This document shows positions 2,261 to 43,505 of a DNA stretch of 64,000 nt, piece after piece (position 1 is the stretch's first letter; every line of letters begins with the position of its first letter). A program made the position numbers and the translations under genes. The notes under the pieces were generated by a model that worked only from the letters and a program-made list of their open reading frames with translations, searched no databases and was not told the DNA's origin. The DNA comes from Oopsacas minuta. Lineage: Eukaryota > Animalia > Porifera. Location: NCBI GenBank assembly GCA_024704765.1, contig JAKMXF010000099.1:420946-484945 (forward strand). Reading direction: 5' to 3'.

Positions 2261-3973
2261 CGGACTAGGAAAAATATCTTTACTTAGTCATCAAGTTAAT
2301 ACGGTTGTAGATTGGAAACAAAGTACTTAATAAGATTATGTTTAGGAGGTGAATTTGATGCTTCAAATACGTGTTTCAAGTAGGCTTTAATAGAGATTTC
2401 TTTTTCCAAGTTACGAAACCCAAAAATCCAACAAATTATACTCCGATCATAATTACATAGCATTCGAATCCCACGAAGAGAGCAAGAGATTTTTTTAGAG
2501 GATACTCAATTGCATTTGTCAATAGAGATATAATTCAAATCAGGATAAGAGAATATCATAATCACAAGGTAGATCTAACCCATTATTGCGTAAAGTTTTG
2601 AGAAGTTTAACAAAATCAAATTTGGGAAATAGACCTGTTTTGTAGAATGTGTCCAAGTATATATATATTTATTTACCCATACATTCCTTTACAAAATCAT
2701 GTATATTTCTGTGACACATATCCTGCTGTAAATTTATTTCCAGTTTGAATTATCCTCCCTCCATGCAAGTAATTTTCGACTAACATTTACTTCAACTTTT
2801 ATTGTAGTATTTCCCAAGTAAGATGCAAGTTGAATTGTACAATGAACTACTACAATATATATGTTCAAACTCTAATTTAGATTCAATGACCTATGCATTG
2901 AAGAATATAACAAGTAGAAATTGTTTTGAGTTGTGCAATAAACATTTAAAATAATAGTAGAAAAACTGAGCCTTAAGCAGGAAAGCCCTCCCCTTTGTCT
3001 ACGACCTTGCCTATTGAATTTGGAAACTGAGTATTCACAATCCGTCCATAGGCATCGTAAATTGTATTCTTACCATTAGGGCCGTCAGGAGATCTTCAAG
3101 GCCGTGAACCTGGCGATTTTCAGACACCCAAAACTTTTAGAGAATAGAGAGCTCAATATCGAGACTTTTGATCACATTTTTTATTGTGTATGATCAAAAA
3201 TATATATATTATTAAATGAACATGTGTTGAATGAATCATATGATAAGTCTGGGTAACACCTGGAGTTTCCAGTTATCCTCCTGGCATGCCTTGGGCCCCA
3301 TAGCACAGTATATCATAAGTTCAAGATCAACTATATTCATTTTGGTTTACTAATCTGTTTGTTATTTCTCCTTATTATATTCATTATACGTATATCTTGT
3401 TATATTGATCGGTTCATACATAATACAAACTTCTAGAATAAATCATGACTGCACCTCTAACTGTTTCCGTTCCACCTTTTTGAGGGACAGACGATCTCTT
3501 CGCTGCAGCCATAGACTACCTTAATAAAGGATTGTGGGTTACCAGCTCGGATCTTGGAACTTGGGTCCATTGTGTATTTATCGAGATCTCGTAAACCGCT
3601 GTAGTTAGATACCCCAAATGTGTTATTATTGAATAGGAGTTATACTTTTAGAGCCCATTGGTCATGTTACCTTACCTGAAAGATTTGTGGAATATGAGAT
3701 ATGCGGTTTTCACACCTTTCTACATTATGTTAATAATGTCAAAATATCGCTTCCAGTTAGAGTTAGACATGATAAATGTGTTATTATACAATGGGAATTC
3801 ATGAGTAAGGAGTCATTTAGTCACATTTCCTTACCTCAAATATTTGTGGAATGTGAGTTATGCAGTTTCACACCTCCATATAAGGTAAATCGTGAATATT
3901 TCGTAATTGGTACGAGTTAGGTATGACAAATGTATAATTATCTTGTAGGCTCTTAGTTTAGCAGAAAATTAGC

Positions 3974-36902: not shown

Positions 36903-37501
36903 TATAGGAGAGATCCTCAATTTTATGCTCCAAACATGAAATCGTAAAAATCATATGCCTAGAGTAGCGTCTAGCGCACCTAGCTAATTTCTTGTTCATA
37001 CGGTATTAATATTCAGCACGTTTTCTTTAGAATAGATTTCTTAACATATCTTTTATCATTTCGTCAAAATTCATGAATCTACTTTTGATAAATTTTATTA
37101 TTTTCATGTCCATTGAATAAATTTTAAAATTTTTCTTCCAACAAGCTATCGTTCAACATGAATCATAGCCTACTTTACATAAGGCCTGATAGTAAAGTCG
37201 AAATTTCGCACCAGGGATGAAGCATAAGGGCAAATTTTAAGCACCCTCATGCTAAATTCGTTTTATTGCAAAATTTATTACTTTCTTTACTTCTAGTTAT
37301 ACTTATTTCAAGTCACTTATTTGCCTTTAGTTGGTCTTTTCTCGCTTATTCAGGGTAATACAATTTACTCATCTTTAGCAGGCCAGTGAAGTCATTTATA
37401 CGATTATTGAATCAGTGACGCCTTTCACTGAATATTTCCTTGTCTAATTTTAACTTTCCACTTTTCTTTCCTATTTATTGTTTTATGTGCAATGCTTGTA
37501 G

Positions 37502-37882
37502 GTCCTACAAGTTATGAACTTCCGGATGGTTGGGAGATGAGATATGATAAACATGGTAGAGCTTATTTTGTTAATCATAATTCACGGAAAACTCAATGGG
37601 ACCCACCACTTCCTAAAGGTTGGGAAGAGAGAAGAGATCCCCATGGTCGTGTGTATTATGTTGATCATAACTCTAGATCAACTACTTGGCAAAGGCCAAC
37701 CCGAGATTATATTCGACGTTTACAGAATTACAAATCTCAAATGGCTCAACAACAGGACCCAAATTCGCAACGTATCTTTATGTCAAGGAAACTTCCCGGA
37801 ATTGACATTTCTCCTGGATCTTCAGACCCTGATGGTTTAGGGTCACTTCCCGATTCCTGGGAGATGAGGCAAACTCCCCAAG
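37502..37882 (+). CDS. WWP1/ITCH-like: Exon: WW1, WW2 and the first half of WW3 of a WWP/ITCH-like E3 ligase
   Basis: Polypyrimidine tract plus tgtag acceptor (37500-37501), donor gtaagg (37883). [30 protein letters not shown] directly joined to [30 protein letters not shown], then [13 protein letters not shown]. Tandem WW1-WW2 arrangement typical of WWP/ITCH/Su(dx). Confidence 0.92.
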
Positions 37883-38949
37883 GTAAGGATACCTATTTTA
37901 TTTATAGCAAAACCTTTACGAGTGAGTGGTAAAGTAGGACCTGATATTTTTGCAATAATGGATTTATTTAACAAAATTTTCTTTCAAAGAATGCGTATAA
38001 TATGTGGTTTCTGCTGTAGTACTGGAATATTCTGATGTTCCTTTCCAGTTTGATTTCTTATTGTAACCTTCACTATTAGTAGCAATAGTTAACTAGTGAA
38101 CAAACGTGGACACAGTTAACCAAACACAACCTTGTTAATCGTTAATCCGTTAACCTAAAGGTTACTTCGTCAACACCAGGGGCGTCGCCACGGGGGCAGC
38201 ATTGAGGGCAATGCTCCCCTGGCAAAATCTCGTGCCCCGATGCATGCCCGTTGGCTCAATTGTAAGTTGAACAATTTCTGCGCGCTTCGCTCGCATCGTA
38301 CCCTCATTATTTTATAACGCAACCCAAAAATCAGAAATTATCTTGTAATAATCTGCTGACCTAAGTATTAATTATTCTTTCAGTATTACCTTGAGCAAAT
38401 GTTTATTCTTATTCATGTACGTAAAGTACAAGTCAAACTGAAAAAAATCATCCAATCCAAGTGTTTATTACGCAGTTATGAGAAATGTTTCAAGACCCAA
38501 AGCAACTTGACAGTAGAAAGGTAATTAATGTTGTAACAATTATAGCTTGTTGTTCAGAGGCTACGTCTCGACTCCACTGGAAGACTTCAGCTCCCCATTT
38601 TCCTGTAGAATTTCTCCTAAAAATGGGTCAACCTCGGAAAATTGTCTACAAAATTTTTTACATATAGTTGGCAGGGGATTTTTCTGAGCTTTTCAATGAT
38701 TTTGTCATGTTATTTTTCCGAACGCTAACACAAAAACGACAAAGCCACCGTTTAAAAGTTTGCACGTGTGATAGTAGTGACCATCCATATTCACTACTAT
38801 CACTCAAGAACGTGCGAACTTTATTATGACAAATTTTTATACGTTTTCTATACAGCTTTAGATTTTGTTTCATTTTTTATACATTGACTTTGAATTCAAA
38901 GATGCGATATTTAAAAGTTCTAAGCGTCATCAATTATTGAGCAATTTTT

Positions 38950-41900
38950 CTTCAAATACTACTCACTAATCAACGAAATTGGTATATTTGCTTTTATGGT
39001 TTAGAGATGATATTCTACATGCAGTAGAACTCGCTTCCTATGTACTCCCACATAAGCCGTACTGTCTCAATTAACTGAAATTTCTCCTTTCTATTCGATT
39101 ATAAATGATTCGGTTAATACGTACTCGGATAAGACGAAAATTATTCTTCCCAAAAGAACAAAATTGATTGAATCATACTGACGTAAGACGTACTCAATGA
39201 TAAATGCAGTAAATATCCTCTACATAATCAAATCTAATTCAAATCCCAATATACTTTTTATCTTATCCATAGACTACTATATCAACAGATGGGAAGTAGC
39301 CAAGCAATGAACATAAACTATCTAGCCGACAGATGTATTGTTCTCCCAATATTTCAGGATATTCAATACTTTTCATCTCCTACTGAACTTCATCTTTTAT
39401 TCTCTACTCCTATGAATAAAATTCTAAATAATTATCCTGCAATTTCACCCTGTCTAACTTTTGAAACGAAATCTCTAGCATCTATTTGAAGTATGTACCA
39501 AACCGTGTTTAAATATGATAAATCATCTAGATATAGATTTGAAAAGGTCAAAATTGAAACCTACATGCTCTATTACCCTGAATAGCAGTTAAAATCTCTA
39601 GTATAGTTTCAATAATCACCAATATGGTGTAAAATATTCACTTGAGAAAAAATTATAATCAATAATAACCAAATTAACATCTGCTGGATAGTTGCCAAAT
39701 GCACTATTGATCAATATACTACAATTCCACAAGTTTCCCCGGTGCTAAAGATTTTCTATTTTTATTCTTTTTATTTTCCAGAGGGAATTTTTCTAAACTG
39801 TATAACTCTCTCAAATGATGTCCAACCAGTTTTTTATTGTGATATTCTTAATAAGTCTCAAATTCCCCATCGTCTTTTAAGTATTTTGGGGAGATTTTTC
39901 CCTAGCAACGCAAGAATGCCTCAGTAATATGACAACATTTCAATCTCAATTGTGTCCTAACCCCGTCGGGTGAACTAATGCATGTGATTGTTTGAGGCAA
40001 TCAATCGACTTCCCACTATATACAATATCGTTTACCACCATGTTAACGAGTCAGCTTTTAGGATAATCATGAGATGGAAGTAATATAGGCAATTAAAATT
40101 CACAATGTTTCTCGAATTTGTAGCATAAATAGTTTTCCCAGTTACCGAGATTTCAACCTTACGAAAATGGATCAATTTCTCTCTACGAATTATTTACAAA
40201 ACAAACGATAACATGCACAACCTACGTAACTAAAGCCTATTCACGATATTTAACTATGGATTACTCCAAGTCTATTCAATTTGACTTACAATTATATTTT
40301 TATCGATAAAACAAAATCGGTGCATTTTGGCTCGAATAAATGTACAATTGATAGTTAATAATTTACGAATGCCATATTATCCAACTGTTACCAGTTTGAA
40401 ATAACGTCATCTGTTTGATCAGAAGTGCAATGTGTTGTTAAAAATGCACCATTTTTAAGGCTCTGATAACGATCACTACGTCTTCGATTCCAGAAATAAT
40501 ATCAAGTGATCGAAGGATGTTTATACATAAAATATAAAATTTTTATAATTTTATATTTTACGTAACTGTGTTATATTAAATACCATGGATAGCACTTATT
40601 TGATAAAACTTTGGTAACTCGGTAGTCACTAGAGTTATTATCAAATAAGTCCAGCTAATATTTACTAGATATCAAACTTCCCATACCCTTGTAATTCATT
40701 TTAATACGGTATCTTGAAGAACTATTGTGTAATCTTAATAATGACCAAATATGGGCAAAATCACGATTGCGTCACATCGGTTTGAGATAAAATTAAACAA
40801 ATTCTTTAAATTACGCTTTTTAATTGCTTTTGAACTTACTAAAGGGTTATACCGGATTGTAATTCTGTTTTTCTTCCAATAATACAATTCGCCGCAGTAA
40901 AACACAAGATTCTGCAAGTTCCCCAACCTACTAGTATTGCAATTAACACAGATAGATCTCCAAACATAGATATCACCAATTTCAGCCATAAAGACTCCGT
41001 GAGTTCACAAATATATTTCGAGATGAACCAATTGGCAGATGATAAGTTTTCTAAGTCAGAAGAATCTAATCCTTCATTTTGAGAGAATTCAGAAACGGCA
41101 TCTTTAATATGTTCATTGGCGGGACTAATGTGATGTTAGAAGTAGAATTAGATATTTCGTATAAAATTGATTCAATTTGTAGAATACCAGTAATTGAATT
41201 GGCAGAATATTTTCCTCCATTGTACAAAGCTATGGCAGATATAAACAGATAATTTCAAGATACAAGTCTACTGAAATATTTCGCTCCATCATATTAAGGT
41301 GAACAAATGTTGTACAAAGGTTATCACAATGCCCACGGGTCTCTCAGAAAATCATATTGATCGAAAAAACGAGGTCCTTGAGATTTTTCATGATTCTTGT
41401 GTAGAATTTTGCATAGAATCCGATTCTGTTGCCAAAAAAATATTTCTCACACAAATTTTTGAGTTATTTTATATTTTTTTGTAAAAAAAAAATTTTTTTA
41501 GTTCCCATTTTTATATGTTGTCGGGTTGCTAATTTATCATATTAGAATCATCGTTATCACTCATACATTGAATATAATACATCCATCAGTCACATATAGA
41601 ATAAATTAAGTACTTATAGAATTAACGAAATTAATTTCCTTGACAGCATTTAGTAGGTTTTCGCCGTAATTTTCTAGAGACTCGCTACATTGATAATTTC
41701 TCCAAACTTTGATGAATCGAGAATGAGCTGATTCAGCTGCCTGCTCTGAAACGGCGCCCAATCCCATACCAACTGGAAGGAATTTGGTGATAAATGGGAT
41801 AACATGTCTGCACACTATATGGACTTTTGTTGAACAATTCAGCCCAGTTAATTTGAATGCTTCTTCAAATTGAAATATCGCCAGTTTGTAATCACCTTGT

Positions 41901-43505
41901 ATCTTTTGCCCAAAACATGTCCTCACTACCTCTGAAAATCGCTTTAAAGCAATGCTGGATGAGTTGCTAATTGGAAAACCAATCTGCTCAACCATCAATG
42001 TAATTTTCCGCATTGCATTACCTTCAAATGCGCCTCCATGGTAAGAACTTCGAGATATGTTATTGTGCTTCAGTAATAATTCATGTGTAACTAACTCTTC
42101 TTCAGACATTGTAGCCACGATCGCATTGTACAACTTCTGACCAACCCCTAACAAAAGATGTAACTCGGGAATATTGAACATCTGCATGTAGTCAACCATC
42201 CATACACCAAGAGCCTCCATATCTTATACACCATCACAGTCAATCGCATGATTCTTTGAGTCGGAGTTATATTCTTCACACAATTTTTGGTACATCTCTG
42301 CATGATGTGCTGATGATCTTGATTTGAATTCGACATGATCCAATCCACTTTTAGCATCCCATACACACCAAATGCATGGGTAACGTCCAAGCATAATACC
42401 CAGACAGAGAGCAGCGGCTTTGAGATCAAAGGTAAAAGATACAAGGTGATTACAAACTGGCGATATTTCAATTTGAAGAAGCATTCAAATTAACTGGGCT
42501 GAATTGTTCAACAAAAGTCCATATAGTGTGCAGACATGTTATCCCATTTATCACCAAATTCCTTCCAGTTGGTATGGGATTGGGCGCCGTTTCAGAGCAG
42601 GCAGCTGAATCAGCTCATTCTCGATTCATCAAAGTTTGGAGAAATTATCAATGTAGCGAGTCTCTAGAAAATTACGGCGAAAACCTACTAAATGCTGTCA
42701 AGGAAATTAATTTCGTTAATTCTATAAGTACTTAATTTATTCTATATGTGACTGATGGATGTATTATATTCAATGTATGAGTGATAACGATGATTCTAAT
42801 ATGATAAATTAGCAACCCGACAACATATAAAAATGGGAACTAAAAAAATTTTTTTTTTACAAAAAAATATAAAATAACTCAAAAATTTGTGTGAGAAATA
42901 TTTTTTTGGCAACAGAATCGGATTCTACGCAAAATTCTACACAAGAATCATGAAAAATCTCAAGGACCTCGTTTTTTCGATCAATATGATTTTCTGAGAG
43001 ACCCGTGTGCCATACTATCAAATTCTTGGTTAATGAAATTAGAATCGACTTATTTGGAAAATCCTGGAGAGTCTTGATTTTGTACTTTTGTGTTCCTATC
43101 TCTCAGATATCAGGCTCACTGTATAGTTTAATTCATTAATTCTTCATCCTTTGAGTCAAAAGATAAGTGGCTTGCTTGTTGTTGTAGATGACTAATAGGC
43201 TGGACTTCCAGGAAGCAACCATGGAACAGCACCCTATTTCAGCTTAGGCCTAGCACGCTGTACTTCAGTGAATGTTCCGTTTCAGTTGGGTACTTGATGA
43301 GTAGCTTCTTATAACTTCATTCCGGAAATGTTTTATGCATACTCCAACAACTTTTATTTTCTCAATGCTATCATGGCGTAGAGCCAGTATCCATGCTTGT
43401 TTAGTTCAGGTGGATTAGTTGGCAATTTAATAAGGGAACTCTGTCTTCTTTCTCATGGACATTATTCTTACATACTGGAGCTGAAGAAGTGTTTGGCATC
43501 GTTTA
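38950..43505 (-). pseudogene. Old THAP/P-element transposase relic, interrupted by the Chapaev element
   Basis: THAP at ~43180-43505 (MPN...PVCK...LPTNPPE...AWI...VCIKHF...GAVPWLLPG). Downstream: HLRELYSLEK...APGKL (~39730-39830) and IERRNFS*LRQ (~39060-39100). Boundaries approximate. Confidence 0.55.
41334..43007 (-). mobile_element. Chapaev-type transposon derivative with 574-bp inverted arms, both derived from the 3' end
   Basis: CACGG...CCGTG termini; 4-bp TSD tgcc (41330-41333, 43008-43011). Transposase C-terminal half: DLK, PCIWC, PELHLLLGVG, YHGGAFEGN, TKVHIV..HV, SEQAAESAH. Arms 41334-41907 and 42434-43007 are nearly identical. Confidence 0.85.

Follow-up and report, generated by a model that had tools for sequence, protein, structure and literature searches.

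The growth of terminal inverted repeats (TIRs) into a fold-back structure follows a mechanism that is already known, with precedents in mosquitoes and flies. For Goblin, a miniature inverted-repeat transposable element (MITE) derived from the Tc1/mariner element Ozma of Aedes aegypti, the proposed model is that a post-excision repair strand with one TIR copied re-invades the other TIR, copies its subterminal region and joins at microhomologies that are inverted in the parent (PMC3814204). In Galileo, of the P superfamily, and in other fold-back-like Drosophila elements with long TIRs, the TIRs grow by recruiting internal sequence, and in D. willistoni Galileo the last 69 bp of the open reading frame (ORF) became TIR (PMC4168063). 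Here we analyze a 64,000-nucleotide stretch (the window; contig JAKMXF010000099.1, here C99, positions 420,946 to 484,945 of the forward strand) from the assembly GCA_024704765.1 of the hexactinellid sponge Oopsacas minuta, and in it a 1674-bp element at window positions 41334-43007 (C99:462279-463952). This element is very probably a non-autonomous fold-back derivative of a young Chapaev-type transposon, generated by a template switch and subsequently mobilized; the repair pathway and the mobilization in trans are the parts of this history that we infer.

The fold-back element ends in CACGGG.../...CCCGTG and is bordered on both sides by the 4-mer tgcc (41330-41333 and 43008-43011, read directly), the candidate target site duplication (TSD) already pointed out in a preliminary description of the locus. 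A repeat search in the window delimited an inverted repeat with arms of 580 nt (41331-41910 and 42431-43010), 99% complementary and with 520 nt between them. Cut to the limits of the element, the arms measure 577 bp each (41334-41910 and 42431-43007) rather than the 574 bp given earlier, while the inverted copy itself and the approximately 100 codons that it was said to include were both recovered. An inverted repeat of 577 bp at 99% is far beyond chance.

The composition of the element became clear by blastn against a reference parent, P, which is the reverse complement of L034:501-3334 (2834 bp) and to which all P coordinates refer. In gene orientation, the element consists of inverted P2258-2834 followed by P1726-2834. 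The parent-collinear segment P1726-2834 occupies 41334-42442 on the minus strand (99.3% identity to L034 over 1109 bp), and its outer part is the left arm (41334-41910, minus strand), equivalent to the native parent 3′ end (P2258-2834) and holding the 165-bp 3′ TIR (41334-41498, minus strand), the 3′ untranslated region and the last ~100 transposase codons (41609-41910, minus strand). The right arm (42431-43007, plus strand) is inverted P2258-2834 and stands in place of the 1725 bp of the parent 5′ part. Since both arms are 99.3% identical to the parent 3′ end but 94% identical to the 5′ TIR, and to the latter over the terminal 165 bp only, both ends of the fold-back element are, on sequence comparison, 3′-derived, as had been proposed.

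The two segments meet at GTATCTTTT (gene strand; 42434-42442), a 9-bp exact microhomology which a three-way comparison with both parental templates located at P1726-1734 and, inverted, at P2261-2269. The match extends to 12 bp with one mismatch (42431-42442), and the breakpoint previously placed at 42433/42434 is one edge of the 9-bp stretch. Microhomology at the junction is as expected of a template switch and supports the template-switch or fold-back origin first suggested for this unit. The truncated transposase frame, delimited from the ORFs and the parent translation, runs from V384, five codons ahead of the FDLK motif (D389), to the stop (41606-42433, minus strand; stop codon at 41606-41608). 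It keeps D389, C406/C409, H591/H596 and E616 and is without D330 and the N-terminal zinc-finger region; because the N-terminal region and the first catalytic Asp are missing, the fold-back element, as far as its sequence tells, cannot be autonomous. The frame is also interrupted by one in-frame stop (42224-42226), a C>A change private to the C99 copy and absent from all parents and from the second copy described below. A chimeric ORF of 86 amino acids (42227-42484, minus strand) starts at an ATG in the inverted arm and reads through the junction into the transposase frame.

When the whole assembly (61 Mb, 365 contigs; the search space throughout) was searched with the element, its positions 1-1109 had counterparts at 97-100% identity in about 18 copies, all of them with another terminal match ~2.8 kb away, in a family of about 20 copies. 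These counts are lower bounds, as the young repeat breaks the assembly. Extracted full-length copies measured 2786-2836 bp, with a single-exon ORF of 661 amino acids that is intact in at least six of them, those on C41 and C77 included. In the 2834-bp parent P, the full-length relative whose true 5′ end the preliminary description had wanted defined, the TIRs are 163 and 165 bp long, 94% identical to each other and identical at both ends over the first 98 bp. The possibility that long TIRs are native to the parent, raised at the time as an objection, is thereby answered: the parental TIRs extend over ~165 bp, not 577. The termini CACGGGTCTC...GAGACCCGTG are found in the fold-back element and in all 13 full-length copies examined (CACTGG in one copy). 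Perfect 4-bp TSDs flank nine of these 13 parents, and 4-bp TSDs also flank all the rearranged derivatives, that is, both copies of the present fold-back and the C122 and C155 derivatives discussed below.

The TSDs of some full-length copies depart from this pattern. One copy (L036; C332:875610-878441) is flanked by a 5-bp TSD, atagg; three others, 99% identical, are without any matching TSD and two have one mismatch (L031, L033 and L049 are among the copies concerned). This exceeds the point mutation expected at such an age, and recombination among copies may have swapped their flanks.

Evidence for mobility comes from a second copy of the rearranged unit. An 81-bp junction probe, of the kind recommended in the preliminary description for finding further copies, had full-length matches at two places only, C99 and C326:245753-245833. 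The element at C326 (C326:244692-246364; L002:1501-3173, 1673 bp) is 99.7% identical to the C99 copy, the similarity ends precisely at the termini, the flanks are unrelated, the TSD is TGCC at C99 and CCGT at C326, and there is no N at either locus. The flanks of the C326 copy (L002:1101-1500 and 3174-3573) belong to an older dispersed repeat with at least 15 copies at 69-84% identity, and in four paralogues of this repeat (on C295, C359, C199 and C166) both flanks are contiguous, with the 4-mer position present once; these paralogous empty sites confirm the 4-bp TSD length for the C326 insertion. A segmental duplication or haplotig was considered for C326 and rejected, as the similarity stops exactly at the element termini. 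Taken together, the same junction, the unrelated flanks, the different TSDs and the C326 empty sites make it very likely that the fold-back unit has transposed at least once, in agreement with the initial proposal. The caution that a 4-bp match may be fortuitous holds for tgcc taken alone (1/256), but the second copy and the TSDs of the family now lend the match support.

In the C326 copy the chimeric ORF is open over 292 amino acids (L002:1776-2651), with its ATG in the inverted arm followed by 277 transposase codons. It is recorded at NCBI as the hypothetical protein LOD99_7158 (KAI6648771.1), a gene model that is the product of a transposon rearrangement. Measured against the majority sequence of the parents, the only change in the C326 copy is the loss of 1 bp from a poly-A run in one arm, and the C99 copy has three private changes, one of which is the in-frame stop.

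A second fold-back element of the family, at C122:609583-611892 (L040:1001-3310), also has two 3′ ends. It is 2310 bp long, with 812-bp arms and the TSD CTTT, and consists of inverted P2004-2834 followed by P1305-2834; it derives from the other subfamily. Its junction lies at a TGTAAC microhomology of 6 bp (12 bp with one mismatch), and it keeps all three catalytic residues while lacking the first ~243 codons. Given this different junction, the C122 fold-back is, from its sequence, independent of the C99/C326 unit, and derivatives of this kind arise repeatedly in the family. Another derivative, at C155:569955-571774 (L045:1001-2820; 1820 bp, TSD TAAG), starts with terminal bases 1-35, to which the terminal 56 bp are attached in inverted orientation with an overlap of 6 bp (an 85-bp palindrome), and continues with P1098-2834, so that a transposon end directly abuts an internal site; this joint could result from auto-integration or from end-joining of an excised end. 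No 5′/5′ fold-back was found among the 15 loci with a 5′ half.

The proposed origin would begin with excision of a full-length copy and repair of the gap from the sister or another copy by synthesis-dependent strand annealing. The growing strand, with only the terminal TIR copied, which over 98 bp is the same at both ends, would have paired again with the TIR at the opposite, 3′ end, extended inwards along the 3′ region for 577 nt and then joined to P1726 at the 9-bp inverted microhomology, giving a product with two 3′-derived ends, 577-bp arms carrying ~100 codons and a 520-bp loop. The 98-bp end identity would make such a template switch easy and would explain both the exact left boundary and the kept TSD. 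Intact family members would then have mobilized the fold-back element in trans, as its terminal recognition sequences were retained, cutting it at CACGGG/CCCGTG and reinserting it one or more times, with 4 bp of target duplicated, which would account for the C99 and C326 copies. An origin of the arms from hairpin opening by the transposase was rejected, because the junction is internal-to-internal at a microhomology and not at a terminus.

Several observations weigh against a single origin followed by transposition. Empty sites were recovered for the C326 copy only, none for the C99 copy being present in the assembly, where its flanks are unique; the empty-site check proposed in the preliminary description thus succeeded at one of the two loci. 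Beyond the junction, the two copies have no derived substitution in common, and the junction is what carries the case for their common descent; the repair pathway is likewise read from the junction. Moreover, the C99 copy has G:C at 41619 in one arm and at the mirror position 42722 in the other, a state seen at no other locus of the assembly; both C326 arms and every parent have A there, so that a single origin needs a mutation followed by gene conversion from arm to arm. Such conversion is well known for long inverted repeats, and the mirrored state of this site suggests that it took place between the C99 arms. Finally, an exact-sequence look-up found the chimeric ORF on record from the same NCBI assembly only.

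These points bear most directly on the alternative that the fold-back never transposed. In this view C99 and C326 would each have received a full-length parent, whose insertion made the TSDs, and one microhomology-directed repair error, repeated at both loci, would later have turned each parent on the spot into the same fold-back. Local formation that leaves clean ends and intact TSDs is mechanistically possible given TIRs that are the same over the first 98 bp, fold-backs recur in the family, as the C122 element illustrates, the absence of a common derived substitution is accommodated, and the G/G versus A/A state of the mirrored site follows directly from different parents. The G allele, however, is in no copy of the assembly outside the C99 element, and the parent contains 122 exact inverted matches of at least 8 bp, including unused ones of 10-11 bp. 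With so many sites available, longer ones among them left unused, and with the C122 fold-back broken at a different site, the same junction is unlikely, judging by these repeats, to have arisen twice independently. We consider conversion in situ at both loci improbable.

A still less probable alternative is that two parents lay head to head, that a microhomology-mediated deletion removed both 5′ parts, and that the resulting composite moved by its outer 3′ ends. Other DNA transposons are known to move as composites by their outer ends, and the microhomology at the junction suits end-joining as well as it suits template switching. This route nevertheless needs an extra step, a tandem inverted pair, and no full-length pair was seen among the ~20 loci; neither C99 nor C326 could be the birth site, as the outer TSDs would mismatch there. 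An assembly or fold-back-read artefact as the source of the inverted arm is hardly credible, for although family copies do break the assembly elsewhere, at single-N gaps and contig ends, two unrelated loci, both free of N, show the same junction, with exact termini and an own 4-bp TSD each and with paralogous empty sites at one of them (C326), and a chimeric read would also invert the flank and would not stop at CCCGTG.

Neither the two ORF pieces nor the full parent protein nor nine homologues gave a useful Pfam match (one distant homologue grazed DUF1280 at 4e-5), and PDB sequence and profile searches with the transposase returned noise only. A protein-language-model search also listed RAG1 families, at lead level only, and the homologues found were sponge and cnidarian-type proteins. 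An AlphaFold model built from the nine homologues had a mean predicted local distance difference test (pLDDT) score of 55, with most of the catalytic core at 65-93. With this model, all 49 Foldseek matches at E ≤0.001 were RAG1, amphioxus RAGL or HzTransib structures (best E 4.5e-9). In VIA-align comparisons, the modeled residues 221-661 aligned to HzTransib with Z 22.3 (350 residues, root-mean-square deviation 4.0 Å), to the RAG1 core with Z ~20 and, at clearly lower scores, to the P element with 13 and to Hermes with ~10. The conserved residues of the transposase are D330, D389, C406-x2-C409, H591-x4-H596 and E616, a spacing that we take to recall RAG1 D600/D708/E962 and the ZnC2/ZnH2 ligands. 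Within residues 12-154, relatives conserve several CxxC pairs and histidines; this stretch, modeled at pLDDT <50, is a candidate for the N-terminal zinc finger of Chapaev transposases.

Chapaev elements are recognized by CAC...GTG termini and 4-bp TSDs (PMC4079192) and by an N-terminal complex zinc finger named 'Chapa' (PMC4411706). With the Chapaev transposons of Kapitonov and Jurka (2007; via PMC4079192 and PMC4411706), the sponge element shares CAC...GTG termini, 3-4-bp TSDs, a Transib/RAG1-related DDE transposase and a Cys-rich N-terminal region; it differs in its hexactinellid host, in the lack of a Pfam match and in the one copy with a 5-bp TSD. The combination of a modeled RAG1/Transib-like fold, CAC...GTG ends, 4-bp TSDs and a Cys-rich N-terminus justifies the label 'Chapaev-type, RAG1-related', and the identification of the C-terminal half of such a transposase on the minus strand of the window, made at first sight from the letters, agrees with the fold matches, termini and TSDs.

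Where the preliminary description went too far was in concluding from the use of two 3′ ends that the transposase does not need asymmetric ends. Between the two ends of the parent there is already full identity over 98 bp and 94% identity over ~165 bp, and many Transib and RAGL elements are on record as having symmetric TIRs (PMC8355894). As the parent ends are symmetric where the transposase most likely binds, mobilization by two 3′ ends adds almost nothing on asymmetry; the fold-back shows only that 5′-specific sequence beyond ~98-165 bp is dispensable in cis.

The family is accompanied by shorter fragments, and a related family also occurs in the assembly. Copies at or near single-N gaps or contig ends include L066-L072 (on C302, C41, C165, C64, C52 and C194) and those on C129, C127 and C87. 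A single-N gap borders seven partial ends, two of which reach it directly, and three further ends stop at a contig end. The short terminal fragments on these nine contigs were considered as MITEs and rejected, since most either have a single-N gap no more than a few bases away or run out at the end of a contig; we read them as assembly truncations. The related second transposon family has ~69% nucleotide identity to the transposase region and a protein relative (LOD99_9244) that is 55% identical; its loci are C56:15945-16645, C11:302624-303324, C326:163682-164369, C99:266598-267298 and others on C277, C317 and C364. In the window itself, 3.4 kb ahead of the fold-back element, there is an ORF (37492-37932, plus strand) with tandem WW domains that are NEDD4-like in motif. 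Insertion of the element into an intron of a HECT ligase gene downstream of this ORF was considered and rejected, as there is no HECT match on the C99 contig.

Goblin and the sponge fold-back share subterminal regions that both come from one parent end, breakpoints at inverted microhomologies and a parent that is still in the genome (PMC3814204). They differ in that Goblin is a miniature, multi-copy Tc1/mariner MITE, whereas the sponge element is Chapaev/Transib-like, 1.7 kb long, retains 277 transposase codons and exists in two copies only. With Galileo and similar elements it shares the growth of TIRs by recruitment of internal sequence; long TIRs are, however, family-wide in Galileo, autonomous copies included (PMC4168063), whereas in the sponge the parental TIRs have ~165 bp and 577-bp arms occur in the derivative only.

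The retained coding sequence in the arms invites a further comparison. Mu killer of maize is reportedly an inverted partial duplication of MuDR at a fixed locus, with demonstrated silencing. It shares with the sponge unit the inverted duplication of part of the transcribed region of an autonomous element, which if transcribed would form a long hairpin RNA against the parent; the sponge unit, by contrast, is itself mobile, and its hairpin RNA is only hypothetical. By this analogy the fold-back could act as a regulator of an active RAG1-like family, through hairpin RNA, a poison subunit or both, a role that we regard as doubtful. Were it to hold, transcription through the 577-bp arms would produce a long hairpin directed, in the manner of Mu killer, against transposase mRNA at its 3′ end, the 292-amino-acid chimeric ORF of the C326 copy, which is without the first catalytic Asp and the N-terminal region, could be a poison subunit like the KP repressor, and the mirrored G:C private to C99 would reflect active homogenization between arms.

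Knowledge of end asymmetry and of RAG evolution is left unchanged by this locus. What it offers is an unusually complete picture of the birth of a long-TIR or fold-back element, with the parent, the exact junction, an independent second fold-back and a unit that has very probably moved, all at ~99% identity. It would extend the template-switch model, developed for the Tc1/mariner and P superfamilies, to a transposase of the RAG1/Transib fold in an early-branching animal, and the family supplies natural substrates for tests of end requirements, namely 5′/3′ ends, 3′/3′ ends with 577-bp arms and 3′/3′ ends with 812-bp arms.

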